A DNA stretch of 64,000 bases, from contig NW_027361677.1 of NCBI RefSeq assembly GCF_039654945.1, positions 23,498,001 to 23,562,000 on the forward strand. The letters run 5' to 3'. Origin of the DNA: Dendrobates tinctorius (Eukaryota). The notes below the pieces were generated by a model, which was given only the letters and a program-made list of their open reading frames with translations, searched no databases and had not been told where the DNA came from. Position 1 is the first letter of the stretch. Every line of letters starts with the position of its first letter. The position numbers and the translations under genes were made by a program. This document shows positions 1-62,603 of the stretch, piece after piece.

Positions 1-3000
1 ATGAAGGCGCTCTACCCTATGAAGGCGCTCTGCCCTATGAAGCCGCTCTGCCCTATGAAGGCGCTCTACCTATGAAGGCGCACTACCCTATGAAGGCGCT
101 CTACCCTAAGAAGGCGCTCTACCCTATGAAGCCGCTCTGCCCTATGAAGGCGCTCTGCCATATGAAGGCGCTCTACCCTATGAAGCCGCTCTGCCCTATG
201 AAGGCGCTCTACCCTATGAAGGCGCTCTACCCTATGAAGCCGCTCTGCCCTATGAAGGCGCTCTACCATATGAAGGCGCTCTACCCTATGAAGCCGCTCT
301 GCCCTATGAAGGCGCTCTACCCTATGAAGGCGCTCTACCCTATGAAGCCGCTCTGCCCTATGAAGGCGCTCTACCCTATGAAGGCGCTCTACCCTATGAA
401 GGCGCTCTACCCTATGAAGCCGCTCTGCCATATGAAGGCGCTCTACCCTATGAAGGCGCTCTACCCTATGAAGGCGCTCTGCCCTATGAAGGCGCTCTAC
501 CCTATGAAGGCGCTCTGCCCTATGAAGCCGCTCTGCCCTATGAAGGCGCTCTACCTATGAAGGCGCACTACCCTATGAAGGCGCTCTACCCTAAGAAGGC
601 GCTCTACCCTATGAAGCCGCTCTGCCCTATGAAGGCGCTCTGCCCTATGAAGGCGCTCTGCCCTATGAAGGCGCTCTGCCCTATGAAGGCGCTCTACCCT
701 ATGAAGGCGCTCTACCCTATGAAGGCGCTCTGCCCTATGAAGCCGCTCTGCCCTATGAAGGCGCTCTACCTATGAAGGCGCTCTACCCTATGAAGGCGCT
801 CTACCGTAAGAAGGCGCTCTACCCTATGAAGCCGCTCTGCCCTATGAAGGCGCTCTGCCCTATGAAGGCGCTCTACCCTATGAAGGCGCTCTACCCTATG
901 AAGGCGCTCTACCCTATGAAGGCGCTCTACCCTATGAAGCCGCTCTACCCTATGAAGCCGCTCTACCTATGAAGGCGCTCTACCCTATGAAGGCGCTCTA
1001 CCCTAAGAAGGCGCTCTGCCCTATGAAGCCGCTCTGCCCTATGAAGGCGCTCTGCAGTATGAAGGCGCTCTACCCTATGAAGGCGCTCTACCCTATGAAG
1101 GCGCTCTACCCTATGAAGGCGCTCTACCCTATGAAGCCGCTCTGCCCTATGAAGGCGCTCTACCCTATGAAGGCGCTCTACCATATGAAGGCGCTCTACC
1201 CTATGAAGCCGCTCTGCCCTATGAAGGCGCTCTACCCTATGAAGGCGCTCTGCCCTATGAAGGCGCTCTACCCTATGAAGGCGCTCTACCCTATGAAGGC
1301 GCTCTACCCTATGAAGCCGCTCTGCCATATGAAGGCGCTCTACCCTATGAAGGCGCTCTACCCTATGAAGGCGCTCTGCCCTATGAAGCCGCTCTGCCCT
1401 ATGAAGGCGCTCTACCTATGAAGGCGCACTACCCTATGAAGGCGCTCTACCCTAAGAAGGCGCTCTACCCTATGAAGCCGCTCTGCCCTATGAAGGCGCT
1501 CTGCCCTATGAAGGCGCTCTACCCTATGAAGGCGCTCTACCCTATGAAGGCGCTCTGCCCTATGAAGCCGCTCTGCCCTATGAAGGCGCTCTACCCTATG
1601 AAGGTGCTCTACCGTAAGAAGGCGCTCTACCCTATGAAGCCGCTCTGCCCTATGAAGGCGCTCTGCCCTATGAAGGCGCTCTACCCTATGAAGGCGCTCT
1701 ACCCTATGAAGGCACTCTACCCTATGAAGCCGCTCTACCTATGAAGGCGCTCTACCCTATGAAGGCGCTCTACCCTAAGAAGGCGCTCTGCCCTATGAAG
1801 CCGCTCTGCCCTATGAAGGCGCTCTGCCCTATGAAGCCGCTCTGCCCTATGAAGGCGCTCTGCTCTATGAAGGCGCTCTACCCTGTGAAGGCGCTCTACC
1901 CTAAGAAGGCGCTCTACCCTATGAAGCCGCTCTGCCCTATGAAGGCGCTCTGCCCTATGAAGGCGCTCTACCCTATGAAGGCGCTCTACCTATGAAGGCG
2001 CTCTACCCTATGAAGGCGCTCTACCCTAAGAAGGCGCTCTGCCCTATGAAGCCGCTCTGCCCTATGAAGGCGCTCTGCCCTATGAAGGCGCTCTACCCTG
2101 TGAAGGCGCTCTACCCTAAGAAGGCGCTCTACCCTATGAAGCCGCTCTGCCCTATGAAGCCGCTCTGCCCTATGAAGGCGCTCTACCTATGAAGGCGCAC
2201 TACCCTGTGAAGGCGCTCTACCCTAAGAAGGCGCTCTACCCTATGAAGCCGCTCTGCCCTATGAAGGCGCTCTGCCCTATGAAGGCGCTCTACCCTATGA
2301 AGGCGCTCTAACCTATGAAGCCGCTCTACCTATGAAGGCGCTCTACCCTATGAAGGCGCTCTACCCTAAGAAGGCGCTCTGCCCTATGAAGCCGCTCTGC
2401 CCTATGAAGGCGCTCTACCCTATGAAGGCGCTCTACCCTATGAAGGCGCTCTACCCTATGAAGGCGCTCTACCCTAAGAAGGCGCTCTGCCCTATGAAGG
2501 CGCTCTACCCTATGAAGGCGCTCTACCCTATGAAGGCGCTCTACCCTATGAAGGCGCTCTGCCCTATGAAGCCGCTCTGCCCTATGAAGGCGCTCTACCT
2601 ATGAAGGCGCTCTACCCTATGAAGGCGCTCTACCGTAAGAAGGCGCTCTACCCTATGAAGCCGCTCTGCCCTATGAAGGCGCTCTGCCCTATGAAGGCGC
2701 TCTACCCTATGAAGGCGCTCTACCCTATGAAGCCGCTCTACCTATGAAGGCGCTCTACCCTATGAAGGCGCTCTACCCTAAGAAGGAGCTCTGCCCTATG
2801 AAGCCGCTCTGCCCTATGAAGGCGCTCTGCCCTATGAAGGCGCTCTACCCTATGAAGGCGCTCTACCCTATGAAGCCGCTCTACCCTATGAAGCCGCTCT
2901 ACCTATGAAGGCGCTCTACCCTATGAAGGCGCTCTACCCTAAGAAGGCGCTCTGCCCTATGAAGCCGCTCTGCCCTATGAAGCCGCTCTGCCCTATGAAG

Positions 3001-3438
3001 CTGCTCTGCCCTATGAAGGCGCTCTACCCTATGAAGGCGCTCTACCCTAAGAAGGCGCTCTGCCCTATGAAGGCGCTCTGCCCTATGAAGCCGCTCTGCC
3101 CTATGAAGCCGCTCTGCCCTATGAAGGCGCTCTACCTATGAAGGCGCTCTACCCTGTGAAGGCGCTCTACCCTAAGAAGGCGCTCTACCCTATGAAGCCG
3201 CTCTGCCCTATGAAGGCGCTCTGCCCTATGAAGGCGCTCTACCCTATGAAGGCGCTCTAACCTATGAAGGCGCTCTACCCTATGAAGCCGCTCTACCTAT
3301 GAAGGCGCTCTACCCTATGAAGGCGCTCTACCCTAAGAAGGCGCTCTGCCCTATGAAGCCGCTCTGCCCTATGAAGGCGCTCTACCCTATGAAGGCGCTC
3401 TACCCTATGAAGGCGCTCTACCCTATGAAGCCGCTCTA
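1..3438. repeat. 18-bp minisatellite (ATGAAGGCGCTCTACCCT, ~190 units, open at window start) with higher-order structure
   Basis: Direct tandem repeat with recurrent variants (A/G in TAC/TGC, GGCG/GCCG, TAAGAAG, 17-bp deletion unit). The MKALYP/HRVERL ORFs are translations of it. Confidence 0.98.
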
Positions 3439-4149
3439 TATTTTACAATAGAAGTCAATGGGAAAGCTAAAAAAAAAAAAAATACAAACACAAACTGGTG
3501 GGTCAGTGATGATTTTCTTAGCGCTATAAAAGGGTTTACCGGTTTCAGAAATCTCCGGTCCCCTTTGTCTGCTGTTCTCGCTCTCTGGTATTATCTGCAA
3601 CGCTGACATCACATCAACAGCGCTGCAGTCAATCAGTGAGGGTAGCGGCACTGAGCGACTTGTGCCATCAACTCAGGATGAGCTGCCGAACTCATTGATT
3701 AGCTGCAGCGCCGCAGACCATAATAGATACCAGGAGACTCAGGGCTGGACCAAGGGAGGATGAGAAAAGGTTATTATGTTTTTTTCAAGGAGGGAGAGAG
3801 GCTTTCTGAAGCCAGAATTAAAAAATGGATTAAAAATGGATTAAAAAACCTCCCATAGTTTATTTACATAGCTCCAAAACCGGATCTGAAACTCAATAAT
3901 GTGATGTCATTTCTGTCCGCCCTGTATTTTTCTGTAATGATCTCCACCTATTTATCTACAATAAAAGCCAATTGTAGTGACCACAATGGTGTACGTGTGC
4001 TCAGCAGTGTATAGCTATAGACCATGCACCTGTCCGGTTGGGTGTGCCGCCTTGTTTATTTGATGGGGAGGGGAGATATTTTCGCTCCTCCATCATTTAC
4101 AGCTTATTGTACAACAACGAGTGTGAAATCTCAGTTCTGTCCAAGAACC

Positions 4150-7100
4150 ATGTGGATTCTGTGCTACTTGACCTTACTTCTCTTGACCAAGTGTCACATC
4201 AACTTTGCCCAATGCCCCGACACCCAGGAGAATGTAGGAGACCATTGCATTCAGCTCGTCAATCAAGAGTTGACTTATGATGAAGCAAAATCTTGGTGCC
4301 AGAAACAAGATGGACGGTTGGCCCAGATTGGAGACCAGGACACCTTAGATGAAATATTACTGCTAATTAAAGATGAGGGATCTTACTGGATTGAAGTCGT
4401 GTCACCCATAAAAGACCAGATGGCTCAAGGTAGCGAGAATAAAAGAGGTAAGCTCGAAAAATAGGAAGTTTAGGGTTAGACCTATCTCGTCTTGACTTGG
4501 ATTTTGTGACCAAAAGCAGGGCTTCTGTTTCCAAAGGTTTTGGAACCAGCCCAAGAGACACACTATTATATTGCATGCTACAATATTAAAAAAACACCAT
4601 TCCTCAAGATGTAGTGGTTACGTCATGTCCCTTAAGGAGGGGTCCAAAGGCCATATTTTCGATCAATGTGCTGTCCATGTGCTCAGTGACCACTCAGTGG
4701 ACACACTGATCCAATAATGATTTTTCACATTGATTAATAAAAAATTTGCAACCTGCACTAGTCTGTTTTTTTTTTGGCATGTCCATAGCATGCAGCAAGG
4801 AGTTCCACATGGAGCCAGTCACGTCCAAAATTTTCAGCTTAAAAACTTTTTAAAACATTGCTACATTTTTTCACCAGTTTACTGTATTCCAATCCCCCCT
4901 CCTTGAATGATTTTATGTATGTCCAGAATTTTGGGAGCAAATTTTGTGTCATTCTGGAATTGGAACATGCAACTTTTTGTGCAATGCCTGACAAAAAAAA
5001 AAAAGATTAAAGACAAAAATGATTAGCTTTTTTTTTATTCCTTGCAAAATTAATGAACTGTGCGCACCATTTTGAAGAATTTGCTGTCAAAAATGTCAAT
5101 ACTACAAGAAAAACAAAACACACAAATGATCAATCGGGTCCATTATTCCAAAGTTCTTTTCCTTTTATGTTTGCCTTGTTTTTTTTCCCACACATTTATT
5201 GATAATGATGCACATTGTGCTTTGTGCATAAGTTTACTGTATCTACATAACACTTAATGCACACAGCGCACTGCCTCTGCCATACAGCGCACTGCCTCTG
5301 CCATACAGGCGTCATCACCTCCCTAGAAGCAATGCATATAGAATTCAATGGAGTATGCCTCCATTTTTTTCTACACACAGGCGTTTACATAAGACCTTAA
5401 TCCATGCAAAAGGAGGTAATAATGAACCCCTAAAGGGGCTTTCTGCTTTTAATATTAATGACCTATCTTTAGGTTCTATTATGTAATGATCATATATAGT
5501 ACAATGAATGGGAGACGCTTCCAGTACAATTTTTGGCCTTTACACAATATACAGACTTCTGTTATCCTTGGTATGGGCAATATCGTCGATCAGCTGATTA
5601 GTGGGGGTGCCAGGAGTCGTACTGGTGAAAAATTCTGCGGATTTTGGATGAAGCTACCTTCTTGAAATACTTTATATATCCTGTGTAAAAATACTTGAAA
5701 TTATACTTGATTAACCTATTGTTACAATCAGAACAAGATCAAAACCAACAACAAGACCAACAGCGGGACACTCGAGAAATTCAGCGCCAAGACGTACAGG
5801 AAAATCAAAATGAAAGACAACAACAAGACAACAGAGAAGATACGCAAAAAAATGAACTACAAAATCAACAAGTAGACCAACAGGACCAATACAAAGGAAA
5901 AAACGAGGACCAACGAGACCAACACAGAGGAAAAGATGAAGACCAACAAGACCCATACAAAGGAAAAAACGAAGACCAACAAGACCCATACAAAGGAAAA
6001 AACGAAGACCAACAAGACCCATACAAAGGAAAAAACGAAGACCAACAAGACCAATACCAAGGAAAAAACGAAGACCAACAAGACTCATACAAAGGAAAAA
6101 ACGAAGACCAACAAGACCCATACAAAGGAAAAAACGAAGACCAACAGGACCAATACAAAGGAAAAAATGAGGCCCAACAAGACCAACACAGAGGAAAAGA
6201 TGAAGACCAACAAGATCAATACAAAGGAAAAAACGAAGACCAACAAGACCAATACCAAGGAAAAAACGAAGACCAACAAGATCAATACAAAGGAAAAAAC
6301 GAAGACCAACAAGACCAATACCAAGGAAAAAACGAAGACCAACAAGACCCATACAAAGGAAAAAACAAAGACCAACAAGACCCATACAAAGGAAAAAACG
6401 AAGACCAACAAGACCCATACAAAGGAAAAAACGAAGACCAACAAGATCAATACAAAGGAAAAAACAAAGACCAACAAGACCAATACCAAGGAAAAACCGA
6501 AGGCCAACAGGGCCAAAAAGACCAAGAAAAAGGAAAAGATGAAGATCAACAAGAGCAACAAAAAGGAATAGACAATCAAGAAGACCAAAGAGGAGGAGAG
6601 CAGGCAGATAAAGGCAATTATGATCACAGAGAACGAGACCAAGAACATCACGAAGAGAGAGACCATGATTACAAGAACCACCACAGAGAACATGGTAAGT
6701 GCTAAATCAGAATGTTGTAGTAATCTAGGTGGGATATGATAAGGTCACATGCTGTTGATTCAAAGTTAGAGAAACTTTTTTTTTAGATGATGATGGCTTA
6801 AATGTCTTGTCTGAAAAAAAGGGCAGAATCAAAGGTTATCCCTAGACAGTAGACTTTTGAGAATGAAGAAAGTGTAAATAATGGTGTCTCCAGAAACCCC
6901 AACTACAGGGGCTCCTATGAATCTAATTAAAATAATTGTTAAACCACAAGTCACACATATGAATGTCGCCTTCCTTGTAGGTAGACACAGGATGGCAAAA
7001 AGGATGGCACAGCAGAGTTCAGGGTGCACTGTAATATATAAAGGCAACCACGAAAAAGGGAGACTTGGTCCAGGCTGTGAAGACAAGAAGGGATTCATCT

Positions 7101-10100
7101 GTTCCTTTGGTAAGTGTATATGGGGGTAGGACAACAGATACGGGTTACACAATAAAAATTGGGGAGTTGTTGAGGGAATAATAATTTAGCAAAAATGCTT
7201 AACGTAAGTTTGCAGTGGGAAATTCATGTAAATGAGTCTTTGGATGAATACAGTATCCTTCCCCCAATGACTCAAACTGTTGGAAAGTGATTGTTGTCAT
7301 GAGTTCTGTATCTTTAATAATATACATGCCAGAATGAAGGTGCAGTATATTACTAGTGTGATACATAGTGATTTTGACTCTGGTCTTCACATTATTTTTC
7401 CTAGATATTCCCAAAATTAACCCGCCCCACATCATTAAGGTGAGATTATGATTTTTAATGTGCTATGGACATATATCAGCAGGAACAGTCCTTATCAGAG
7501 CTTACATTATACATTTGAGTTACTTGCTGAAGATCCTCTGCCATAAGTCAATATTATATTTTGATGACAGTCGATAAATCTGGAATATTTGATAATCCAG
7601 GTCCCATGACTGCTGGATTATAGGAGTTTTGTTTTATGACATTAGAAATATGGCTACTTTCTTTAAGAAAGTGCGCTTTTTATCCATAGTCTGTGTCTTG
7701 TATTATGCCACTGATTTGAGTTCAGCTTGTAATACCAGATGCATCCACTGGGAAAGAGGGGCGCTGTTGCTGAAAGAAAGAAGTAATGTTTTTCTAATGT
7801 CGTACAGTCCACATAAAAGACGTTTTGTACACTGCTCATTAAAGTAAAGAGAACACTTATCACACATCCGATCTCGATGGAAGAAAGATAAAAGGTGACA
7901 ATCTTTACTGATAAAAATTGTGTAATTCTTATCAATGAAAACCAAATTCATCAACCAGATGACGGCTGGACTCCAATTCACCCTGAATAGTGAAGAAGGG
8001 TAAATTCCAGGATCCAATTTGTGTAAATGACATCATGACAACTCATAATGTGATCAGTACTGTGTATGGATCCCTTGTGTCTCCCAACAATGTCTGGGCA
8101 TGTTCCTGATGAGACGGCATCTCCTTTCAGACCTAGATTAGGGCATCAGTGGTCTCCTGGACAGTCTGTTGTGTTACTATGCATTGTCGGATGCCCTGAT
8201 GTACTGTATCCCATACTTCTCGATTGGACCCTGGTCTCGGGAAAATGGAGGCCAGTCAAAGACATCAGTGTCTTTGTCATCCAAGAACTGTCCACACACA
8301 CTTGCCACTTGAAGCCAGGTTGGCCCGGACCGAGAGGAACCTAGGATCCACTGCATCAGTGTAAGGTCTGACAATTGCTCTGACGATTTCATCCCAGTAC
8401 CTAACAGGGGTCAGTGTGCACCTTTGGCTTCTACATGGAAGTTTGCTCAATTCTTCAAGGATACGTCTCCCGAGACTATCACTGACCCATCTTCAAAGCA
8501 GTCATTCTGGATGATGTTATAGGTGGCAGAATGTTCACCACGGCATCAACTCTTTCACGTCGGTCACATTTGCTCAGCGTGAACCTGCTGTCATCTGTGC
8601 AGAGAACGTGTGCCAGTGGTGTTGTCAATTCTTGTGTTTTCTGGTGAATGCCAATCCAGCTGCACGGTGGTCTTACTACGGGATATTGACCCTCATGCCG
8701 ACCTCATGGAGTCTGTTTCTGACTGTTTGGTCATGCACACCACAAGTAGCTGCTGGAGGTCATTTTGTAGGGTTCTAGTAGTGCTCCTTGTGTTCCTCCT
8801 TACACAAAGGATCAGATACGGCTCTTGATGTTGGCTTGCTACCTATCTGCTATCCCTTTCCAGCATTTCTCATGTAATGGCCCAATATCCTGGTATCTGC
8901 TCCATGCTTTTGAGACTAGAGACAGAGGAAACCTTCTTTTGATAGCACGTATGCATGGATATGCCATCATGGAGGAGCTGGACTACCTGTGCAACATGAG
9001 TGGTCTGCATGTTCCGGCTCATACTACCAGTAGAAACAAGGATGAGCAAAACGCAAAACCAGTAAGAAAGGATGAGAAGATAGGAATTATCAGCAGCCAC
9101 CATCTGCAAAATCATTCCCGTTTTCGGAGAAGACTTGTTCCTCTCCAGTGCCCCTATGTCATTTTATTTGCGCCGGTGATATGGATTCACGATCGCTTTT
9201 GCTTCCTACCCGACAAATTGATGCCCCTGAAGCTTAATTGTGCAGTGACTGTGATATCCATACGTTGTCTACATTTTTTGAGCAGTGTATATATACGGTA
9301 ACTACATCCTCCCATATATACCCATTTTCCATTGTGCTCCTATATAAAAAAAAAAATTATTGGCGGACGTTTAATTGTGGTTTACTTTTCTTACAGGGAC
9401 GCTCTGCTGTATGTTTGTACGGAATGTGTCTAAGAAGAAGAGGTACTACCACCAAAAAACCGGCTGTGACAAAACCGAAACACAGTGGAACAGCCCCTCC
9501 TCCGGACCTGGATGCCATCACCCCTCTCCAACAGGAAAAGCTTAGAAATATGTCCGTGGATGCTGCAATTCAGGTTATATAAGCCTATTATATAGCATTA
9601 TACCACTCAATCATTGCCTGGTTTTAAGAGTTCCCCTATAGTGATGAGCGAGCGTGCTCAGAAAAGGTGTGATCAGAGCACGCTCGTGTCCTTATCGAGT
9701 ATTTTCGGCGTGCTCGAAAAAAAATGCTTGAGTTGCTGGGGCTGCATGTCGCGCAGCTGTTAGACAGCCGTAACACAGGCAAGGATTGCCTGTTTGTTAG
9801 TGTTAGGGTTAGCTGCGCGACATGCAGCCACGGCGACTCGAGCATTTTTTTTCGAGCACGCCGAAAATACTCGATTAGGACACGAGCGGAATTATTACCA
9901 TAAATCATTGACAGTTACTATTACCATTACTTTCTAATTGGCAGATTACTTCAGAGATCGTAACTCTGATGGTGAAGGTGGCATCAGACATCTGGAACGT
10001 CTCGCTGGTATCGAAAGCTTCGGATATACTGAGCCAGCTGCTGAACAACAGTGAACTGTTATTACCCGAGTCCCAGGTACAAGGGCAGTCTATCGTAGTG

Positions 10101-13100: not shown

Positions 13101-16100
13101 TGCTCCATATTCATACTATAAATCTAGGTTTGAGATGAAACAAGCCATGCTGTGATTTGTAGTACTACAGCGGATGATGAAATGATACATTATGTGTGAT
13201 CATATCTCTGCTTCCTTATGTTTCTGGCCATCATCAGGGTGATGTCTTCCAACCTGACCTCAGCACCTTTCACCACCGACCTCCCAGCTGCCTGCAGAGT
13301 CACCTTCCCTTCCTCCTCATCAACTTTACGAGAAAAAACTGAGGCCTACCAAATGGTAAATTTAATGGTAAGTTACCTTTTTAGCCCATACTTGCAATTA
13401 CGATGTGGCATTTATCACATTGTTATATATTAGCTGGGCTGAGCATTGAAAATGTGGCATGTAAACGTGGCAGTAAGTTTTGGGGTTTAACTTTGTGATA
13501 ACATTTGTTGCGGCTGATTACACCATAATCTGCTCCTCCGCCATTTTTGCAGCTTGCAGATGAAGGTTGTACGATCTGATCCGCGTGACTGCAACAATAT
13601 TCCACATGCAAAAAAATCTGCTGCAAAATGTCCTTTTTTCCAGCTTTCCATACATCTTGCTGTAATCTTCACAACATTAACCCTTTCTCCCCTTTTCTTT
13701 CCAGCTCTTGGCTCTCTCCGTGAATCCATTTAGTCACGTGAGTCCTGTGGAAATAGCGGGTCCGGTGGTGAACATAATGCTCGGGGCTGATGATGGCAGC
13801 ATTGGCGTTGACAATATGACAGAGTACATTGAGGTGGGCAGAACTTCTGGCTTGATATGAGCCAGGGAATAGATGCGTGCGCCAACAGGGGCGAGCGATG
13901 CCAGGCGATGATGCATACATAGCTCTGCTCCTAATTTCTCTTCGTATTTTTGCAGATTGCCCTGTTGGTTTTGGCTTCCTACCAGTATGATGTGAGAGGT
14001 GACATATGCCAGGGATCTCACAATTTTGCCGTATTTTTTTTCTTCATATCTTCTAGATCGTGTTGATCAAAAACCAGAGCGCAATGACCAATGAGTCCCA
14101 GATGCACCTGACCAAAGAGAAGAACATCATTTTAACGCTAAACCTGACCTCTGCCAACCATTCTGTGGTCCTGAAACTGGAGCCGGAACTTCCAGTCCAG
14201 CTTATCCTATATGTCGGATTTGAGGCTAAACCCAACAGTAGCTTATTCCTGCACGAGGTCTCCCTGCCAAACGGTAAGGACCCCCATCCTGGTTCATTCA
14301 TTCACCATGACATTGCAGTGATGCTATTTAGCGGGGAGCAGAAACAGAAAGCAGAGAACCCCTGTGCAAGAAGAATAAATTGTCCCTTGCTTTCCAGTAG
14401 CTCCTTGGACAGCAACCCTTATATGTTACCCTAATTTCTGATGCCCACATGGTATTGCCGCCCTTGGTCGAACATGTTGTATGGCCGCCCTTGGTTGATC
14501 ATTTGGTACGGCCGCTCTTGGTTGATCATATGGTATAGCCGCCCTTGGTTGATTATATGGTACGGCCGCTCTTGGTTGATCATATGGTATAGCCGCCCTT
14601 GGTTGATTATATGGTACGGCCGCTCTTGGTTGATCATATGGTATGGCCGCCCTTGGTTGATTATATGGTATGGCCGCCCTTGGTTGATTATATGGTATGG
14701 CCGCTCTTGGTTGATCATATGGTATAGCCGCCCTTGGTTGATTATATGGTACGGCCGCTCTTGGTTGATCATATGGTATGGCCACCCTTGGTTGATTATA
14801 TGGTATGGCCGCCCTTGGTTGATTATATGGTACGGCCGCTCTTGGTTGATCATATGGTATGGCCACCCTTGGTTGATTATATGGTCCGGCCACTCTTGGT
14901 TGATCATATGGTATGGCCACCCTTGGTTGATTATATGGTACGGCCGCCCTTGGTTGATCATATGGTATGGCCGCCCTTGGTTGATCATATGGTATGGCCG
15001 CCCTTGGTTGATCATATGGTATGGCCACCCTTGGTTGATCATATGGTACGGCCGCCCTTGGTTGATCATATGGTACGGCCGCTATTGGTTGATCATATGG
15101 TATGGCCGCCCTTGGTTGATTATATGGTATGGCCACCCTTGGTTGATCATATGGTATGGCCACCCTTGGTTGATCACATTGTAAGGCCGCCCTTGGTTGA
15201 TTATATAGTACGGCCGATCTTGGTTGATCATATGGTATGGCTGCCCTTGGTTGATCATATGGTATGGCCGCCCTTGGTTGATCATATGGTTCGGCCGCCC
15301 TTGGTTGATCATATGGAGTGGCCACCCTTGGTTGATCATATGGTATGGCCGCCCTTGGTTGATCATATGGTATGGCCACCCTTTGTTGATCATATGGTAT
15401 GGCCGCACTTGGTTGATCATATGGTATGGCCGCCCTTGGTTGACCATATGGTATGGCCGCCCTTGGTTGAACATATGGTAAGGCCGCCCTTGGTTGATCA
15501 CATGGTATGGTCGCCCTTGGTTGAACATATGGTATGGCCGCCCTTGGTTGACCATATGGTATGGCCACCCTTGGTTGATCATATGGTATGGCCACCCTTT
15601 GTTGATCATATGGTATGGCCGCCCTTGGTTGACCATATGGTATGGCCGCCCCTGGTTGACCATATGGTATGGCCGCCCTTGGTTGAACATATGGTAAGGC
15701 CGCCCTTGGTTGATCACATGGTATGGTCGCCCTTGGTTGAACATATGGTATGGCCACCCTTGGTTGATCATATGGTATGGCCACCCTTGGTTGATCATAT
15801 GGTATGGTCGCCCTTGGTTGATCATATGGTATGGTCGCCCTTGGTTGATCATATGGTATGGCCACCCTTGGTTGACCATATGGTAAGGCCGCCCTTGGTT
15901 GATCATATGGTATGGTCGCCCTTGGTTGATCATATGGTAAGGCCGCCCTTGCTTGAACATATGGTATGGCTGCCCTTGCTTGAACATATGGTAAGGCCCC
16001 CCTTAGTTGACCATATGGTAAGGCCGCCCTTGCTTGACGAGTATAGTTTTTTTTAACTTATTTTCAATCTAATGTCTCCTTTTTCTTTCCAGATGGCTTA

Positions 16101-19100
16101 TTTACCTGGGTGTTCACTCAAGACTACTTTACCAATGGCATCGGGATATACTATATCAATGTGACTTTGACTAATGGAAGTATATGGGAGAAGCAGACAA
16201 CTTTGGCTTGTACTGTCAGCCTATTCGCTGCACAGTGTGTTTACTGGGATGAAGATTTGGGAGACTGGGATGAATATGGCTGTTTTGTGAGCACTTAAAG
16301 TTTTTTTTTTTGGTTTTTTTTATATCCCCATCGCCTGCTGCAGTTTATTTAAAGAAAACAATCTTTAGTCACTCTCCCCAGGTCCATTTATGAGTCTCTG
16401 CCACCACTCCTGGTGTCTCTTATTGTCTGCAGCGTTGATGTCGACAGCACTGCAGCCAATCGGTGAACTTGGGGGCCCGCTTATTGATTCACTTTAGGCT
16501 ATCAATGTGACGCTAATGCTACAGACAGTAACAGAGTAACAGTGGCGTAGACTCAGCACTTGACCCAGTGAGGGTGAGAAATGCGCATTTTTTCCTAAAC
16601 ATTCTGAAGCCGTAAAACCTTTTTAACTTTATCCATCATGTTTCTGTGCATTATATCTATCTATGCTCATGTATTAGTCAAGGTACTGTAAGCTTGCAGC
16701 ATTGCTGACACATTTATTTCCACTTTTTTGGAGACAGGTTGGACCCAGAAGCACAGAATTAGAGACCCACTGCCTGTGCAACCACCTGACTTTTTTTGCA
16801 AGCTCCTTCTTGGTCATGCCGCATGTGGTGGACCTCAGCGATACTCTGATGCTCTTTGCCAATGTGGCAAATAATCCAGTTGGGCTGGCGCTGCTCGGCA
16901 GCCTGGTAGGATTCTTCCTGATTGTGGTATTTTGGGCGTGGAAAAAAGACAAAGAGGATTTTAAAAAGGTAAACGGGAAGACATGACTACGAGGCATGAA
17001 GAGATGACACCGGGGGGAGTTTCTAAAATACATCCATCACCGGCACCAGGTACTGCGCTGCTTGTAATCCTGACTTTATGCATTTTCTTTCCATCTTCAG
17101 GTCAGAGTGGCCATTCTTACAGATAATGATCCTGCTTTTCACCATAGATATATGGTCAAAGTATGCACCGGATTTCGTAGGGGGTCTGGCACCACTTCTC
17201 AGGTATATACTTTGTATACTGCACCTGTTTGCCGTTATGATAACCCTGTTGGTGTTTGTTGCCTAATAAAAAAAATATATACTTTTTTTGGTTAGCGATC
17301 AGACGTACAAGTCATGAGAAATCTATAGGCTGGAAGTGCACTGGGGGCGTGTCAGGGCACTCGCACTGTTTCATCCACACCCCCAGTGCACTTTCAGCCT
17401 ATTTTGCATACGGTTCCGGATTTGAAAAAAATGGAATCATTTTTATTGCCGTACAATCTCATGTCTAAAAAATGGTTAATTTTAATGTCAAATTAGATTA
17501 TTTTCATATTCCTTATGGATTTATCATGATCTTTTTTTTCTCTGTTTTTGCAGGTTGTTCTGACCCTGTATGGATCAGAGGGGCAGTCTGATTCCCATCT
17601 CCTATCGGATTCTGAGAAGGAGATATTTCACAGAGGGGCGGTCGATGTTTTCCTGCTAAAGACGTGTAATTTGGGGGAGCTGCACAGCCTGAGACTTTGG
17701 CACAGTAACTCTGGACTCAGCCCTTCTTGGTAATGGATCTGATTAATAAAAATGCCGTAGATCTGTCTTTGGAGTCCCTCAAGTGTTTTTTTTTTGTTTT
17801 TTGTCATTTGGACAGGTACGTGCACCGTGTCTCGGTGACTGATCTGGCCGCTGAGAAGACTTGGTACTTTCTTTGCGACTCTTGGCTTTCTGCCGACTTC
17901 GCCGATTGCCAGATGGACCGAATCTTTGCTTCTGCCTCTAAAGCCAACCTAATGTCTCTGAGGTATGGAATCACGTAGGACGCAATGGCAGCACACGCCA
18001 AATACTTTGACTCTCCCATATTTGTAGATCTTGCATTATCTGTTTTTCATAAGTTTTTGCTGGCACAGAGGTGCCGTCCGGTGACACCTGCTCCTATGGC
18101 TAGGGTCACAGGACCGTTTTCTCTCCATGCGAGAAATATGGTCCTATTGTGCTAATCAGACTCTGATCAGAGGGGGATCCGAGTTTCTCGGAGGTGGAGA
18201 GAAAAAAAAAGTTTCTCCACCCCCTCCTTTATGTCACTCCGTGAAAATAAGACCCATAGACTTGAAACCGATTCTTGCAGGCATGGGCCCATATACTTGA
18301 ATCAGATTCCTGCAGGCCTTGACCCATAGACTTGAATTCGATTCTTGCAGGCGTTGACCCATAGACTTGAATTCGATTCTTGCAGGCGTGAACCCATAGA
18401 CTTGAATCTGATTCTTGCAGGCATGGGCCCATAGACTTGAATTCGATTCTTGCAGGCGTGGACCCATAGACTTGATCCCGATTCTTGCAGGCATGGGCCC
18501 ATAGACTTGATCCCGATTCTTGCAGGCATGGACCCATAGACTTGAACCCAATTCTTACAGGCGTGGACCATAGACTTGAACCCGATTCTTGCAGGCATGG
18601 GCCCATAGACTTGATCCCGATTCTTGCAGGCGTGGACCCATAGACTTGATCCCGATTCTTGCAGGCGTGGACCCATAGACTTGATCCCGATTCTTGCAGG
18701 CATGGACCCATAGACTTGAACCCAATTCTTACAGGCGTGGACCATAGACTTGAACCCGATTCTTGCAGGCATGGGCCCATAGACTTGAACCCGATTCTTG
18801 CAGGCATGGACCCATAGATGTGAACCCGATTCTTGCACAGAGCGATTATTTTCCATGGACCACTCGGTTGGAGAAGAAAATCGGACATGTGCACAGCCCT
18901 GTAGCATAACATGGGTGTGAGTGCTGTCCGTCAAAACCATGGATAGCAGTCACTGATTTGTCTGGCTGTGTGCACGATTACTTACATTTAGCCACCGTCC
19001 TGTATTATGGGCCCCTACCAATGTTACGTTTATTATTGCTTCACTCTGGGACTTTTGCCGTTTTATGTTTGCAGGTATCTGCTATTCTCAGGCACCGTAG

Positions 19101-22100: not shown

Positions 22101-25100
22101 TATCTAATACAAATACCTGTCCTGGAGACTCCCAGAAAAAGGGGGAACCCTCCAGGGTTCGTGAGAAAACGGGATACAACGCCTTGGAGAAAAACTGCAA
22201 CAATTATGTAGGTACTATTGAATCTGAGGTCGTGAGATAAAATGTATCTGAGACCAAAGTTGAGACAAATAAGTGTATTTAACAAAGCAAGAAGTAGAAC
22301 ATAAACTAACAGAGATTTTCCTGCAATTGTAACGAAGTGCACAGCACACAACAGAGACGTTCAGCAAACTTAATAGCGGGGCGCGACCGCTAATATAAGC
22401 TAGTCCAGCAGTAATAAGAAGCAAGAGTGCGAACGGCACTTATACGTGGAAGTCCAGCAGTGAAGAGAAGAATACAACCGGCACTCATACGTGGAAGTCC
22501 AGAACTATGCAGACAGAGGAGATGACATTTTTCATGGAAGTCCAGAAATACATGAGTGGGGCATAACAGGAAGAAGGCCTTAAATGTACCTTTTGGGTTG
22601 AAAAATTCCACTCTAGTCCTGCACAGCAGCCCACAACAGACACAGTCTCAGAAGTCTGGACAGTAAGTAACCCCAGCCTGGATCCAGAAGCAGCTTAGAA
22701 GACTGAAGGCAGCTGGAAGTGGCGAGTCAGAGCACTGAGTAAGGAGCAGCAGCTGCAACCTCAGAGGCAAGTCAGGAGAAAGCTCAGAAGCAAACAGCAA
22801 AAAAATACTCAGGCAAGGAGGATCTCCGGACCCGGACTTAAATAGCAGGACAGACAGGATGTTCGAGGATAGGGCGAAGACCGGACTCCATCTTGGACAA
22901 GGGCAAAGCAGGCTCCATGGAACATCCGGAATCCTTACAAAAACAGTACTTTTGAAAGTTTTCCTGTGTCTTGAGCCTGGATGCGCTGTCATCCAATGTT
23001 TATTCCTAAGGGCGGAAATGGTGCAGTGACCTGTAAAAAGGGGCTTGGTAATAGAAATTTTTTAACACTGTGCTTTGTACATTGCAGTCCGGAAGTGTGA
23101 AAATTGGCAAGCATATCAATAAGAAAACCTTTCCACAAGGCAACCCTTAGACACAGGCCAAATGACTATCTTGGTTGCTGCTGGAATTGACATTTATTGA
23201 CAAGTCTAAGAAAAAACAAATGCAAAAACCCTGCACCCAATATTTCAGATTTTATTTTAAAGGGGGTTTTACATCTTTAGGGACATTTTTTTACTTGAAT
23301 GCATTTTGGGGATCAAAATAATTTTTTTACAGTTGGATTTTATTCAAAGTTTTACAGCGTTTGCCTCCTATAGCACTGTGTATTTCTGGCTGCAGAACCA
23401 GTTCACTGAGAATTCAACATTGGAAAACTCTCCCATGAGAATGAGCACAATTTATTTTTTGCTTTCTGGGCTCCTCTCAGTTGATTTATGACAACAGACC
23501 ACAATTGCATGTGCAGAGAAACAAAAAAAACCTGTAAAAGCCAAATTGTGTAAAAAATTTTATTGAAAAAAAAAAAAGATATATATCTATTTTTAGGCCC
23601 CAAAAATTATCCAAAGGAAATTACTTAAGGTATAAACTGTGTTCCAAATTATTATGCAAAAAGAGTTTAGGAGTGATAAGGTTAGAATTTTTCTGTTTGT
23701 CATTTAAACTCATTGATGGTTATGTGTGTCAGGGCTCTTTATATCACTGAAAGCAATTGCAGATACCTGTGCAAATTAGTTTGGCAGGTGTGTCCAAATA
23801 AAGGCAAGACTACTTAAGAAGGCTGTTCCACATTATTAAGCAGCCGACATTTTTTGCCAAAATGGGAAAGAAAAAGGATGTGTCGGCTACTGAGAAGCAA
23901 CAAATTGTGGAGTATTTAGGTCAAGGCATGACTACAATCAACATTGCCAAGACACGTCATCGTGATCATCGCACAATCAAGAAGTCTGTAGCTGATTCCC
24001 AGCACACACGTGTGCGTGCTGAAAAGGAAAAATTGAGGACTCTTTCCAACAGGCAATTGCGTCAGGTTAAAAGAGCAGCAGACAAGTTTTTGAAGCTGCT
24101 GGTGCCTCCAACGTCCCCCGAACAACAAGATGCAGGGTCCTTCAGAGATTTGCAGCTGTGCGTAAGCCGTCCTGTCGACCACCTCTATCCACTGCACACA
24201 AGCAGAAACGGCTCCAGTGGGCCAAACGATAAATGAGACGGACTTCCAGACTGTTCTCTTCACTGATGAGTGCCGTGCAACGCTCGATGGTCCAGATGGA
24301 TGGAGTGGAGGATGGCTGGTTGATGGACACCCCATGAAAACACGGCTAAGGCGCCAACAAGGAGGAGGTGGAGTAATGTTTTGGGCTGGAATCATGGGGA
24401 GAGAGATTGTCGGCCCCTTTAGGATCCCTGAAGGGGTAAAGATGAACTCCATAATCTATGTGGAGTTTCTAAAACAGCACTTCCTGCCATGGTTCAAGAG
24501 GAAGAACCGTGCTTTCCGCAGCAAGATCGTTTTCATGCATGATAATGCACCGTCTCATGCTGCAAATAACACATCTGCATCTCTGGCTGCTATGGGAGGA
24601 CAAACTTATGGTGTGGCCACCATCTTCCCCTGACCTCCACCCCATTGCGAACCTCTGGTGCATCATCAAAAGGAGTGTCTATGATGGCGGGAGGCAGTTC
24701 ACATCTAAGCAACAGCTCTGGGAGGGGATTCTGTCCACATGCCAAACAATTGAAGCACAAACCATCCAAAAACTGACAAATTCAATGGACGAGAGAGTTC
24801 AGAAGCTTCTTTCCAACAAGGGGTCCTATGTGCAAATGTAACATCACCTAGAATAAAGTTTTGACTTGAAAACTGTTTGATTTCATTTTGTAATAAGCTG
24901 ATAATGCTTATAATTTCACAATTGACCATTTTTTTGTTCAAAATAAAAAGGTTGAAAACTCTGCTGTGCATAATAATTTAGAACATGCATTTTGCGTGTT
25001 TCTTATTTTTAAATATATACTGTTTTCATAGGCAGCTTGTTCAAAAACATTGCAATTATACTAGAATAGTAGATGACTGGAAAATAACAATGACTGCAAT

Positions 25101-28100
25101 TCATATAGGTAATTTACAGAAAATAGGAGGAAATATTTTTTGCATAATAATTTGGAACACCGTGTATAATAAGCTATTATGACGGTTATTGCAGATATTG
25201 TTTTCCATTTTTAGGTTTACCAAATTATGCCAGTTTCTTTATTCTTTTGCTAGTGCACATGATTTTTCTGGTCACCACCATGCTTATGGTATATGCAGAC
25301 AAAAGTCCCAATGAGTACAACCTGTACACGGCCATAACCAGCAGCTTCTCCACTGTGAATAACATTCAGTTCATACCAGATTTTTATAGCTGGTCACGAG
25401 GAACGTTGCTACCAAATCTGTATACCGAAAACCCAGGTAAGCGATATTTACCAGACCATACATGGTGGCTGTATTGGTGGCCATATTGCTGATCAACACC
25501 AAAAATGCTGTAATAGAAAGATTTAAGTTTATAAACCTATTTCTTATGACTCTCATCTCAGGGTTCATTACTGATGGAAACTGCTTCCTCCTGGGCAGCC
25601 CCCGCATCCGGCAGCTACGAAGACTCTATAACAGTGCAGGCAATCAGAAGCTGTACCACCGAGAGGATACGGGCAGCTACGGGCCTATGTGGAGCCCATT
25701 AAATGGCAGCAGCAATGCTTCAACAGACATGTGGATGTACCACACGGTGGCTGATCTGGGAGGACATCCAGTCTGGACACAGCTTGAATATTACCCTGGA
25801 GGGGGATATGTGGCAGAACTGGGCCTAAACAGCAGCTCTGCTGGGAGGTATAACGTTGGAACCACCGCTACAGGACGCACGGGTCTGAGTAGGGCTTAAC
25901 GGGTAACTTTCTTATTTCTCTTCTGCAGTGTGATTACTGACATGGAAACAAGCAAATGGCTGGACAGCTACACCAAAGCCATCTTTGTGGAGTTCAACGT
26001 GTACAATGCCAATATAAACTTCTTCTGTCTCATCACCTTCATCCTGGAGACCACCGTGATCGGTAGGACTTGTGTGTATACAGTTACTGTAGGTACAGAA
26101 ATATCCAGACACTGACCGATTGAAGTGGAGACTTTCCGGATACATTAAAGGGGTTGAACAAAAATATCCTGTAAAACATTTTTCAGGATGAATGGTTTGC
26201 ACCTTGTAGGGACTCATCTATATCTGATGAAGTCTTCTATTTATGGTCAACTTAGATACTGAAAGATCCACTTCCTGGAGAGTGATCTTCACTTGGGTGG
26301 ATGCTGTGAAGGGGTTTTTCCTCACTATGGAAATGATTCTGGAATCATCCACCACTGTTGTCTTGCATAGACATCTAGGTCTTTCTGAGATCCCAAGCTT
26401 TTTTTTTGCAGAATGTACTAAACTGTTCATTTGGCCCCTCCTAATATTTTTGCTATCACTTTGATGGATTTCTTCTTTTTCAGCCTAGTTATGGTTGGTT
26501 TCTCTTCCACTGAAATCATCTTTGTCCACATGTTGTGGGTTCATAGCTACAGCTTCTAAATGCAAATGCCACACCTGGAAACAGCTCTAGCCCTTTTACC
26601 TGCTCAATTAATGAGGCAAAAGCCCATTAAAGAGCTTTTGAGATAATTGTCCAATTACCTTTGGTCCTTTAACTAGAGGCAGCTCCATATTAAAGAGCTG
26701 AAATTCCTAAATCCTTCCCAACCCTCAAATGAAAGCAGTGAGTCTGCACTTTAAGCTCACTTTGATTATAGAATTGTATCTTGATTATGTTTTGGTAAAT
26801 GGCTAAAATCCCAAAACTTGTGTCACTGTGCAAATATTTCAGTATGGGAAACACTACTACAGGTGCTGTATATTGCTAGTGATCCTACGGACTTCCTCCT
26901 ACCTGCCGATATCCCCACTCTGTTGTCACTCAGCAAAGGAGGTGCCGTGGAGGCCGGCAGGTATGTTGGCCATGGACTAACATGGTTGCTGGAACAGGGT
27001 CTTGTGCATCGATTCTCATGTAGCTTGCAACCGGCGACGGAAAATCCAACACTTTTGTGACTCGGTGTTGCAGTAGGTCGTAACACAACACATTAAGAAT
27101 TGGTCAGATGCAATGTTCTCCATGGAGCACGAGCCTGTCGAGAACCCTTTGTGGTTCTGTGTATTAATAATTATTCATTGTTCCTGCTCCTTATAGGAAG
27201 TCTATATCCATCAAGCGAATTGCAAATTATGCGACTGTATCATGAAACGGAAGGAAACACAACCGTTAAGTTTGTCAGTGAGATGCTGTCCATTGTGATC
27301 TTCTTGTACATCATTATAGTTCAGGTGAGGATAATTTAGTTAATTTTCTATAGTTAAGGATTAGTAAGTAAACCTAGACCCCAGAGTTGTACACGGAGAT
27401 CATCAGAGCCAACCCCCCCAGTAACCTTCATAGGAATAGAATAAAAGTCTGGCTGCCTGCAGCCACCTCTAGGGGGAGCTCATTGCACTGGGATTCATAC
27501 AGCAGCTATTGAAGTGAAAAAAGTCTCCCCCTAGTGGTGGCTGCATGAAAACACCACTCAGTGCTGTACTATCTTCTGCAATCTACATACAAGTGGGCTC
27601 ATCACTTCATTTTGATCTTTAAAGGTGGTCCGTTTGAAGCAACAAAAATGCTCCTATTTTTGCCAGTCAAGAAACTTGCTGGATTTGTGCATCATTGCAA
27701 TCTGCTCCGCCAACACAGCGCTGTACATAAAGCGTGTATATCTGCGCCAGCGGGATGTAGATCGTTACCATGCAGATCGTACTCGGTGAGGATACACTTT
27801 TATATCTTTATTACAGTCACTATAACTTATGTACAACACTGCGGAATAGGTTGGCGCTTTATTAAAGGGGTATTCCAGATAGAAGCCAATGGAGAGGTGA
27901 TCAATGCTACATTTGTTGGATCATCTGAACTGGGGCCTATTAACGGTCGCTGACGTTTAGGGACTAAGACGCTTCCAGACAAGTCTCACACATTGGACTT
28001 TCATGGCCCAATTGAAGGTCTCTTGACATGAAGTCCTAGGCATATACAAGGCCGTTGAGTCTGGATCCTCCAGACAGTTCCTTTCATCAGATGATGTTAC

Positions 28101-29628
28101 TGATGTTCTTTAGTGGCTGTTGGCTCAGTAGCGTCTTACCCCTCTCCTTGGTAGGTTTGTCAGCTTCTACGACACTGCCACCATCGACAGTGCCCAAAGC
28201 TACACCATCGCCTTCCTGGTATCACTATTAACCATCAAGCTCTGGCGCCTCCTCAACCTGAACCCAAATCTGCACCTGATCACGATGACGCTGCAGAAGG
28301 CGTGGAATGAAATCAGCGGCTTCCTTCTCACCATCCTCATCCTCCTGGTGGCGTACTCTATTTCGGTGAGTATTGTGCACATCGGTGGAGCTTTGTGTTC
28401 TAATTTTATATATACTTTTTTTTTTTAAATTTTATTACTTTTTCAGTGCAACTTACTTTTCGGCTGGACCATTTCCAATTACAGAACGGTGACGGACTCT
28501 GCTGTGACCATCATTAGCCTTTTAATTGGCATTTTTAATTACGATGAGGTAAGGGATGTATTCACACTCACATCTGTACAGCAAGAGTTTACGCTCCCAA
28601 AACTTTAAGGACTGTTCCAGTTGCTTGAATAACACCATACTGCATTCTTCTTTCGATCAGCGCCATAATTTCTCGCCAATACCCCATTTATGTCCTTGGC
28701 TGCCTTTATTATAAAGCTTGTGACATCTCTCCATGTGCAGGTGATCAATCTGGACCCCGTCCTGGGCTCCCTGCTCATCTTCACCTGCGTCATTTTTCTC
28801 GCATTCATAATCGTCAATATCTTCTTGTCCGCTTTATTGAACGTCTTCTCCAGTGAACGGAAGAACCCAACGGTAAGAACAAAATTGTAAAAAAAAACAA
28901 AGACAAACCCCCACCTGCAGCAAATAGGTAATCAGCCTTCACAATACAAGGTGCATACATGATTAAATAGATCTTCAACCTGATGAAGGCTGGTGTACTT
29001 ACTTAGAAAATGCACACCAGAACGCCTGTGTCATCCAGTAACGAACATGCTCACACAATGGTTATTGCAAAATTAGACAAGGGAAACTATGATAAATGAT
29101 CTAGTAGAGATGAACAATTTACTTCTAACTCCCTTTGTACTCCGTCCAGACCAGTACAACATGGCAGCGGGTCTTCGCTTCTGCATCCAGCATCCAGGGC
29201 ACCTTTGGAACCAAATACGCACCATGATATTGTGGGGCTTAATAAGCACCAGAAGAGGCGAGGATGCCAGGCACAGAAGTGAGGACACACCAGCACAAAT
29301 CAAATTGCTCATCTCTATTAAATAGTCATTGGGACAGTGACTTTCAAAGGAAGTACACGAGCCTCATCTGGTCTGAAATCTATTTAAGAATGTATCCCAG
29401 TTGGTATAGTGAAACCAAATGACAGATCCGCTTTATTATGGAACATATAATAGAATTAAACTGTATACTCACCTGTGATGTACCCCCAACCTCATCTCCA
29501 CCTCTTCCACTTTTTAGCCATATGAAGAAAAAGAAATAGTGGACATGCTCATGTTAAAGCTGTTGGGGCTTTTTGGAGTATCCAAGAAGGCAGAACAGTC
29601 ATCAGCGGGGAAAGAGAAGCAGTCATGA
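4150..29628 (+). CDS. PKD1L3: Polycystin-1-like 3 (signal peptide, C-type lectin, GAIN/GPS, TM1, PLAT, polycystin cation-channel region), ~2014 aa with exon 2 or ~1693 aa without
   Basis: Phase-consistent GT-AG exons: 4150-4447, 5732-6694, 6981-7109, 7405-7439, 9397-9573, 9945-10076, 10332-10505, 11026-11153, 13238-13367, 13705-13833, 14057-14273, 16093-16286, 16738-16968, 17101-17202, 17554-17729, 17816-17962, 19075-19265, 19497-19699, 20740-20923, 21000-21192, 21277-21496, 21634-21733, 21897-22040, 25254-25436, 25562-25847, 25929-26062, 27197-27324, 27625-27785, 28155-28365, 28447-28548, 28741-28872, 29518-29628 (sum 6045 nt). Motifs: signal peptide MWILCYLTLLLL; GPS CVYW..W...GC..THCLCNHL/TFF; PLAT YMVKVCTG..GTTSQVVLTLYG, WYFLCDSWL; polycystin LLGSPRIRQLR, YPGGGY, WLDSYTKAIFVEFNVYNAN. 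Assigned to PKD1L3 rather than PKD1L2 by adjacency to IST1 and lack of a long REJ region. Confidence 0.9.
5732..6694 (+). CDS. PKD1L3: PKD1L3 candidate exon 2: 321-aa Q/D/K/E low-complexity insert with ~18 x GKNEDQQDPYK (33-bp unit, ~5896-6489) and His-rich end
   Basis: Acceptor ttaacctattgttacaatcAG, donor G|GTAAGT, phase 1 to 1, open frame matching exons 1 and 3. Confidence 0.7.
7830..9287 (-). mobile_element. Decayed Tc1-like DNA transposon in a PKD1L3 intron
   Basis: TA|CACTGCTCA ... TGAGCAGTG|TA termini; minus-strand remnant THVAQVVQLLHDGISM resembles a Tc1 transposase N-terminal HTH; multiple stops and frameshifts. Confidence 0.75.
9638..9890. mobile_element. Palindromic MITE-like element
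   Basis: ~80-bp arms (about 9681-9760 and 9811-9888) are near-perfect reverse complements; no coding capacity. Confidence 0.7.
11690..12580. repeat. ~60-bp intronic minisatellite (TCAATCAGGCAGGGTGGGTGGAGATTCAGCAGCAGCAGGTAGGAGGAACACTGAGGAGC)
   Basis: Tandem copies, diverged at the 5' end and near-identical from ~12200 to 12560. Confidence 0.9.
14445..16040. repeat. 27-bp intronic minisatellite (CCTTGGTTGATCATATGGTATGGCCGC, ~59 units)
   Basis: Direct tandem repeat inside the 14274-16092 intron; source of the PYDQPRAAI-type ORFs. Confidence 0.97.
16775..16800 (+). other. PKD1L3: GPS autoproteolysis motif HL/T of PKD1L3 (H codon 16783-16785, T codon 16789-16791)
   Basis: Translation CLCNHLTFFAS matches the canonical GAIN/GPS cleavage consensus. 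Confidence 0.85.
18251..18840. repeat. 35-bp minisatellite (GACCCATAGACTTGAACCCGATTCTTGCAGGCATG, ~17 units), apparently inside a MITE-like element (~18100-18900)
   Basis: Direct tandem repeat in a PKD1L3 intron. Confidence 0.9.
22328..22939 (-). mobile_element. Possible solo LTR
   Basis: Begins TGTAACG and ends CCTTACA (TG...CA with 5-bp inverted ends), ~610 bp, with internal short direct repeats (ATACGTGGAAGTCCAG). No clear target-site duplication. Confidence 0.4.
23635..25164 (+). mobile_element. Full-length but frameshifted Tc1/mariner element (resembles the DD37E/TRT group)
   Basis: TIRs GTGTTCCAAATTATTATGCA at both ends with flanking TA. Transposase is split over ORFs 23862-24236, 24217-24633 and 24509-24841, with FTDECRATLDGPDGW, MHDNAPSH and SPDLHPIANLW (catalytic E lost). 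Confidence 0.9.
26215..26840 (-). mobile_element. Tc1 transposon 5' fragment
   Basis: Minus-strand remnant RPRCLCKTTVVDDSRIISIVRKNPFT...TINRRLH, a Tc1 HTH2-like region. Confidence 0.65.
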
Positions 29629-40480: not shown

Positions 40481-41258
40481 TTTGTTTTTTAGTGCCTAGT
40501 ATAGTATTGTGTAGGGAAATTGATGATTTCGGCTTACAAATACTGATGTAAAATACTGAGGGTGTGACCGTGGCCTTATGCGCTGCGGATATTAAATCCC
40601 GGCCATTTCCCTTAGAAGGTGTGTGGGTGTAAAACCCCATTGTGAATGGTAACGATGAGACCATGTGCACATGGAGCGTTGTGGGGAGTCTTCTTGGGGT
40701 ACGTCGTCTCCACGAAACACCTGAACGTCTCCTCCTGTTGGTTCCTATTGTAAATCTCCTCCCTGTCGCTCGTACGTTCCGGGTTTCTAAAGAAAAAGGC
40801 CAAAAAAAAGAAGTGACCGGAGCGCTCTTCAGGCGTCCTCCTCTACCGAGCTGCTCCGTACTTTACCATTGAAGTCAATGGGAGGCCCCAAAAATAGTCA
40901 CAATGATGGCGGGTGTTTGTTTTTAAGCCTTTCTCAGGCATTTTCACCTCACAGAACGCTGGCGTTTTATTCATTGTTTATAGGGTTTTTAAAAAAAGGC
41001 TCAAAAAGACTTGGAAAAAACATTATTTTTTACACAAAGCTTTAGAGAAAGAAATGCCGGATAGACGGCGCACTTTCTGGTGTCGTGTGAACGTGGCCGG
41101 TAGGAAAAAGAGTGCCGGAGACGTCGGGGAAGGGGGGCTCTCGCTGTGCCATATTTCCCGGTGGCTTGCGGGGGCGTACAAGCATGGCTGACAGGATTCA
41201 AGGCACCTCGTTATATGGCAGACATTTATGGGGGATACACGACAGCATCACGTCTACG

Positions 41259-60967: not shown

Positions 60968-62603
<1,636 letters not shown>

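Follow-up and report, generated by a model that had tools for sequence, protein, structure and literature searches.

In the poison frog Dendrobates tinctorius, the N-terminal C-type lectin-like domain (CTLD) of a PKD1L3-like gene is encoded in two halves, and the exon that lies between them consists largely of tandem repeats. The gene is located in the window analyzed here, a 64,000-nt stretch of contig NW_027361677.1 (RefSeq assembly GCF_039654945.1, positions 23,498,001 to 23,562,000 of the forward strand) whose sequence contains no N. Exon 1 (E1) and exon 3 (E3) carry the two halves of the domain, exon 2 (E2) encodes 321 residues rich in Gln, Asp and Lys, and E2 is spliced between the two halves in a related species. 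We consider it likely that E2 is a constitutive coding exon from which a large acidic, unstructured or extended loop would project out of a CTLD that probably binds no sugar and whose core would still assemble.

The translation of E1 begins with a signal peptide and continues with the N-terminal half of the CTLD, including Cys0, Cys0', Cys1 and the YWIE strand, and that of E3 comprises the C-terminal half with Cys2, Cys3 and Cys4 (in SGC, PGC and GFIC, respectively). The acceptor of E3 is preceded by a good pyrimidine tract. Because the junctions of E1, E2 and E3 are all in phase 1, both E1+E2+E3 and E1+E3 are free of stop codons. An initial annotation, made from the letters of the window, had described these coordinates and phase 1 boundaries, an open segment of 963 nt with a GTAAGT donor, about 18 copies of GKNEDQQDPYK, and three Cys on either side, with a YWI strand in E1; a renewed reading of the window sequence and its translations agreed with it on every one of these points.

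To place these exons on transcripts, we aligned contigs of four runs (X1, X5, X7 and X12) to positions 4000-9900 of the window. X1 comprises unspliced genomic sequence from a closer relative, which differs from the window by about 3.7%. X5, X7 and X12 bear another organism label than X1, and their divergence from the window amounts to about 5% in E1 and E3 and to 10-12% in E2 and exon 5 (E5); that these runs are RNA was guessed, the argument being that their contigs are spliced. In X12 record 8 (504 nt) and X7 record 19, positions 4133-4434 are joined to 5729-5882, and the 31 letters bridging the two blocks consist of 15 nt duplicated in frame from the E1 tail, followed by the E1 tail itself, which ends in AATAAAAGAG, and then by AAC. 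X12 record 9 (1430 nt) covers 6436-6698, 6985-7108, approximately 7405-7440 and 9444-9577; its first skip corresponds to the joint 6694>6981, since GTAA and GTAG are only one letter apart. X5 record 17 (6358 nt) begins at E3 and runs on through exon 4 (E4) and E5. As four introns have been removed at GT..AG sites, the contigs stem from spliced mRNA. The junction check that the initial annotation had proposed thus yielded, in the relative, joints of the 4447>5732 type as well as 6694>6981.

These contigs also bear on whether E2 is a cassette exon that gives rise to a compact CTLD or to a form with the 321-residue loop, depending on tissue or stage. Skipping of E2 would keep the frame owing to its phase, and E1+E3 alone make a CTLD of normal length. 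The weak pyrimidine tract at the E2 acceptor would fit such a scenario, and so would the X5 contigs, which are interrupted precisely where E1 ends and where E3 starts, the points at which a second path through the assembly graph would branch. However, unspliced pre-mRNA explains these breaks equally well, since the intron before E3 likewise has G as its last base, and the X12 and X7 contigs pass from E1 into E2 unbroken and unbranched. No 4447>6981 joint was among the joints listed from the relative's contigs, which may drop minor isoforms, so that on rare variants this evidence is silent rather than negative. We regard regulated skipping as unlikely and favor E2 as an exon that is apparently included as a rule.

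Within E2, the in-frame unit reads GKNEDQQD(P/Q)YK and occurs in 18 in-register copies; the underlying 33-nt unit is absent from the rest of the window. That the frame is open is weak evidence when taken alone, because E2 consists of 55% A and only 5% T, which makes stop codons rare, because one antisense frame is likewise open, and because the window is rich in minisatellites, many of which have a period divisible by three (18, 27, 39, 39 and 24 nt) and several of which are open in multiple frames. One of them (41258-44815) is open in five of six frames, so that an open frame means little in this genome. E2 might accordingly be pictured as an intronic minisatellite that is open by chance and unspliced in the window's species, and the variation between units, which shows no significant synonymous bias, would suit that picture. 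Several findings argue against it. The first base of the T-poor block directly follows an AG and its last base directly precedes a GT, the similarity to the unit declines gradually within E2 and reaches background precisely at both splice sites, and the phase is compatible with the neighboring exons on either side. The non-repeat flanks of E2 were open in just 11% and 7% of composition-matched shuffles. Above all, the spliced contigs of the relative include E2 with boundaries at or within 6 nt of the prediction, and its indels with respect to the window (+15, +6, -3, -24 and +24 nt) are all multiples of three; the indels listed for X1 measure 1-3 nt, and all but one of them fall within intron 1. 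We therefore consider a chance-open minisatellite extremely improbable and regard E2 as a genuine exon.

The graded decay of unit similarity within E2 suggests that the array was amplified and homogenized inside an exon that was already coding and of low complexity; a minisatellite captured ready-made from the intron would be a poorer fit. Hence, the term "exonised minisatellite" used in the initial annotation found no support, as expansion within a coding exon explains the decay at least as well.

We then located the insert within the fold. E1 alone matched the Pfam family Lectin_C with 23.4 bits (cut-off 22.6) at profile positions 2-47 of 107, and E3 alone (42 aa) gave no Lectin_C match in Pfam. 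When the two were spliced, residues 18-140 of E1+E3 aligned in one stretch to the contiguous CTLD of the protein P0133 (127 residues), with the E1/E3 junction in the long-loop region, immediately before the EPN-type loop of P0133. This alignment implies that E2 is inserted after the WIGL-type strand, here YWIE, and before Cys2, and at this location the Cys1-Cys4 pair must span the insert. The three Cys of E1 and the three of E3 stand at the spacing expected of a long-form CTLD, from which we infer the pairing Cys0-Cys0', Cys1-Cys4 and Cys2-Cys3. The collinearity of E1+E3 with a contiguous CTLD and the splicing of E2 between the halves in the relative bear out the claim that the domain is split by the repeat exon. 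The residues that flank the insert (4420-4447 and 6981-7010) also form short, unstable repeats: in the relative, the E1 tail is longer by 15 nt (a QxQGS copy) and the stretch behind 6988 by 24 nt (a further copy of the MAKRMAK type), both in frame.

The domain lacks an EPN or QPD triplet and reads RLGPGC where WND..C is expected, which makes it lectin-like and probably not a sugar binder. At 7058, six residues before Cys3, the window has GGG (Gly) where X1, X5 and X12 have TGG (Trp); this Trp is probably the one of the CTLD WND motif, and the Gly reflects either its loss in the window's species or a base error.

The listed differences between the window and the relative, counted over the best-supported rows, are mostly non-synonymous (non-synonymous/synonymous: 9/4 in E1, 13/3 in E2 and 2/0 in E3), which indicates that the whole tip of the ectodomain evolves fast. 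It is conceivable that the N-terminus is decaying, i.e., that the CTLD is no longer a constrained fold and E2 is part of a drifting, disordered tip that is tolerated and not used. The in-frame 15-nt and 24-nt duplications in loop residues beside the insert, the absent sugar-binding motifs and the Gly at 7058 would agree with this, as would the observation that a truncated mouse channel is functional without its ectodomain (PMC8357825). Speaking against decay, the six Cys, the YWIE strand, the reading frame and the splice sites have been retained despite the fast change, even where amino acid identity in E1 has fallen to 74%. This value comes from P0151, a genomic open reading frame (ORF) of a more distant relative found by a word-indexed search with E1; that relative retains E1 with its three Cys and its donor, and its contigs reach only the first 600 nt or so of intron 1, short of any E2. 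A further candidate, P0090 with its contig L003, was uninformative. We assign decay of the N-terminus a low probability and prefer a CTLD whose core is kept.

The protein encoded by E2 contains 82 Gln (25% of its residues), 55 Asp, 41 Lys, 33 Glu, 19 Tyr and 9 His. It has a net charge of -34, an isoelectric point of 4.6 and a grand average of hydropathy of -2.97; 7 of the 321 residues are hydrophobic, and there are no N-glycosylation sequons. AlphaFold2, run on the single sequence of E2, returned only long helices broken at the Pro-containing units (predicted template modeling score 0.22, mean predicted local distance difference test score 61). The insert thus appears to have no compact fold, with the qualification that a single-sequence model cannot tell disorder from extended charged helices. 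No Pfam family and no ESM Atlas neighbor was found for E2, and neither the complete E2 nor its non-repeat tail retrieved a homologue among candidates that were limited in length, full-length annotated frog proteins lying outside this set.

The loop could serve as a spacer, as a charge brush, as a binder of Ca2+ or H+ near a channel that responds to Ca2+ and acid, or as a transglutaminase substrate. Since the sequence evolves fast, a tolerated and weakly constrained expansion is the default view. A more specific proposal is that the loop is a functional charged module, either a cross-linking site for transglutaminase or a low-affinity brush for Ca2+ and H+, that tethers or tunes the PKD1L3/PKD2L1 channel. 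Its content of Gln and Lys, 88 acidic residues and the His of its tail invite this idea; in addition, the PKD1L3/PKD2L1 channel answers to extracellular Ca2+ and to acid wash-out (PMC8357825), and in PC-1, the C-type lectin (CTL) domain is an activator of the channel complex (PMC7728438). However, the sequence is fast-evolving, and no homologue or family match was found for it; we hold the proposal to be very unlikely. Almost as doubtful is an elaboration in which the repeat loop acts as a polyanionic, His-tailed, Gln/Lys-rich arm whose binding of Ca2+ or protons, or cross-linking to mucus or matrix, tunes the CTL-dependent gating of PKD1L3/PKD2L1, the number of repeats being an evolvable dial.

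Table 1. Features of the PKD1L3-like gene and its neighbors in the window (a slash marks an exon boundary; X5, X7 and X12 are runs of the relative).
Feature	Position	Strand	Length and phase	Basis and remarks
E1	4150-4447	+	298 nt; ends in phase 1	ATG at 4150; donor GAG/GTAAGC
Intron 1	4448-5731	+		33% T, ordinary composition; skipped in X12 record 8 and X7 record 19
E2	5732-6694	+	963 nt, 321 codons; phase 1-1	Acceptor ..ACAATCAG/; donor ATG/GTAAGT
Homogenized core of E2	5874-6516	+	33-nt unit, 19.5 copies	Tandem Repeats Finder score 1027; 90% matches, 0% indels
His/Arg/Asp/Glu-rich tail of E2	6574-6694	+		7 His in the final 40 residues; covered by contigs of the relative that continue into E3
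Intron 2	6695-6980	+	286 nt	GT..AG skip in X12 record 9 and X5 record 16
E3	6981-7109	+	129 nt; phase 1-1	Acceptor CCTTCCTTGTAG/; donor TTG/GTAAGT
E4	7405-7440	+	36-nt microexon; phase 1-1	From RNA contigs of the relative
E5	9443-9577	+		From contigs of the relative; starts a Thr/Pro/Lys-rich stretch
GPS motif, two exons	16047-16295, 16678-16983	+		Pfam GPS, E-values 6.8e-05 and 2.7e-04
PLAT exons	17530-17975	+		Pfam PLAT 3.6e-07 (31.3 bits) at 17530-17730, continuing 17709-17975
Polycystin (TOP) domain exons	25462-25896, 25900-26112	+		Pfam Polycystin_dom 3.7e-10 (40.1 bits) and 8.2e-16 (58.6 bits)
PKD_channel exons	28132-28425, 28429-28605	+		Pfam PKD_channel 2.8e-16 (60.1 bits) and 1.2e-03
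ZNF821-like gene (C2H2 and STPR)	48594-49820	+		Domain matches
ATXN1L, intact	56808-58865	-	Single exon	AXH domain 4.7e-40

The PKD1-like domains that follow the CTLD exons all lie on the same strand and downstream of them (Table 1). The first GPS exon scored 23.8 bits against a cut-off of 22.5 and the second 21.8 bits; the motif HCLCNHLT is present, and the GPS motif of the two exons reads HCLCNHLTFFAS. In PKD1-like polycystins, GPS precedes the first transmembrane helix and PLAT occupies the first intracellular loop. Strand and order agree between the CTLD exons and the channel exons, and the 6358-nt contig connects E3 to a point past E5, the aligned region ending at 9900. Compared with structures in the PDB, the polycystin-domain exon matched mouse PKD1L3 best (7d7e_A, 7.4e-15) and PKD2L1 less well (6e-06), no structure of PKD1L2 being there to compare. 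The PKD1L3-like gene named in the initial annotation was thus recovered with its downstream domains. The neighborhood of a ZNF821-like gene, ATXN1L and PKD1L3 fits the human gene order at 16q22, and it is on this synteny that assignment to PKD1L3 over PKD1L2 would rest. An exhaustive search of representative sequences with E1 returned multi-CTLD proteins only and no PKD1L3 orthologue. In PKD1L3, the domains are described in the order CTL, REJ, GPS, PLAT and channel (PMC8357825). The data support a frog PKD1L3-like gene with PKD1-like architecture.

The surroundings of the gene are repetitive as well. Positions 1-3438 are filled by an array of an 18-nt unit (about 192 copies, 92% matches, GC 0.55-0.57), which extends beyond the left end of the window and, on its other side, stops about 700 nt before the start codon of PKD1L3. 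Between the channel exons and the next gene, there are three GC-rich minisatellites at 36774-39150 (39 nt, 64 copies), 41258-44815 (39 nt, 91 copies at 97% identity) and 45296-46352 (24 nt, 44 copies). A frame-broken, transposase-like stretch is located at approximately 23800-24840, between the PLAT and the polycystin-domain exons. Two ORFs of Tc1/mariner transposases (Sleeping Beauty-like; 340 and 358 aa) with intact helix-turn-helix and DDE_3 domains lie further downstream at 53264-54283 and 61305-62378.

Based on these findings, we propose the following working model. E2 is a coding exon of the proposed frog PKD1L3 orthologue and sits in the intron position separating the halves of the N-terminal CTLD, so that the long-loop region of the mature protein would start with some 321 additional residues. 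The central 33-nt unit has been amplified and homogenized to some 18-19 copies, older degenerate copies forming the flanks. The insert may be disordered or may form extended charged helices that are broken at Pro-containing units, looping out of the domain, and the two parts of the CTLD would still be held together by the disulfides Cys1-Cys4 and Cys2-Cys3. The resulting loop would be a fast-evolving polyanionic projection or spacer on the ectodomain of the channel.

Several observations weigh against this model. All RNA evidence was obtained from a different species, whose exons differ from the window by 5-12% at the nucleotide level, and a search for sequencing runs returned no RNA of the window's own species; that E2 is spliced there too is suggested by the frame and the splice sites, which have been kept. 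In the relative, E2 apparently begins 6 nt further upstream, still in frame, and its AACCAG corresponds to the intronic AATCAG of the window. Because the window has AC where the relative needs AG, its acceptor most likely lies six bases further on, at the AG of 5730-5731, which keeps the frame; the placement at 5732 is accordingly a prediction from the window sequence, at a site with a weak pyrimidine tract. Furthermore, E4 has no canonical frame-keeping donor in the window, which reads AAGG/TGAGAT (7405-7442); use of the GT at 7440 would produce a 35-nt exon and a frameshift into E5, and a direct join of E3 to E5 is in frame. Either the assembly has slipped by one base or E4 is skipped in the window's species. 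Together with the Gly/Trp difference, the missing E4 donor raises the possibility of decay or of assembly slips in the window copy. Finally, the variants between units comprise 4 synonymous and 9 non-synonymous types, compared with 13 synonymous and 86 other possible single changes; this split tilts to constraint and is not significant, so that it provides no significant sign of purifying selection. Given the mostly non-synonymous differences in E1, E2 and E3, the entire N-terminus may be under little constraint.

Like mammalian PKD1L3, the frog ectodomain opens with a signal peptide and a CTLD, and the GPS, PLAT, polycystin and PKD_channel domains follow. The mammalian protein includes an 11-transmembrane part, and its low-complexity Ser/Thr-rich region comes after the CTLD and not inside it. 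As in canonical CTLDs, the frog domain is a six-Cys long form with a WIGL-type strand and, minus E2, has a normal length; in contrast to canonical C-type lectins, it is devoid of the Ca2+/sugar motifs. The long-loop region of CTLDs tolerates variation, and the point of insertion is a common CTLD intron position. To our knowledge, no CTLD carries a tandem-repeat insert of several hundred residues in its long loop. The repeat array resembles the variable number tandem repeat exons of mucins, in which a short unit of whole codons is amplified and homogenized in one exon with degenerate edges and fast in-frame changes in length, and the Gln/Lys-rich repeats of involucrin resemble E2 in composition. 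Unlike these repeats, which belong to stalks or to cytosolic envelope precursors, that of E2 lies inside a folded domain of an ion-channel subunit; it offers no Ser/Thr for O-glycosylation and shares no sequence similarity with them. The contrast with mammals drawn in the initial annotation is consistent with mouse PKD1L3, whose CTL is one stretch (residues 30-138 or 30-150) without such an insert (PMC7728438), whereas the frog protein has 321 repeat residues within its CTLD. We found nothing in the literature on repeats in amphibian PKD1L3 or on repeat insertions in CTLD loops. While PKD1L3, CTLDs and coding tandem repeats are each known, a repeat exon of several hundred residues in a polycystin CTLD was not found there, and we see it as a lineage-specific variant.

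If the N-terminus is merely drifting, E2 would be an ordinary lineage-specific expansion of low-complexity sequence. E2 is also a clean case of a tandem array that grows within a coding exon while non-coding minisatellites of comparable period abound in the genome. The ectodomains of the PKD1 family are poorly understood, and the lectin domain of PC-1 reportedly activates the channel complex (PMC7728438). In this context, frog PKD1L3 represents a natural test of how large an insertion the long-loop region of a CTLD tolerates and of how important the CTLD is for PKD1L3/PKD2L1 function.

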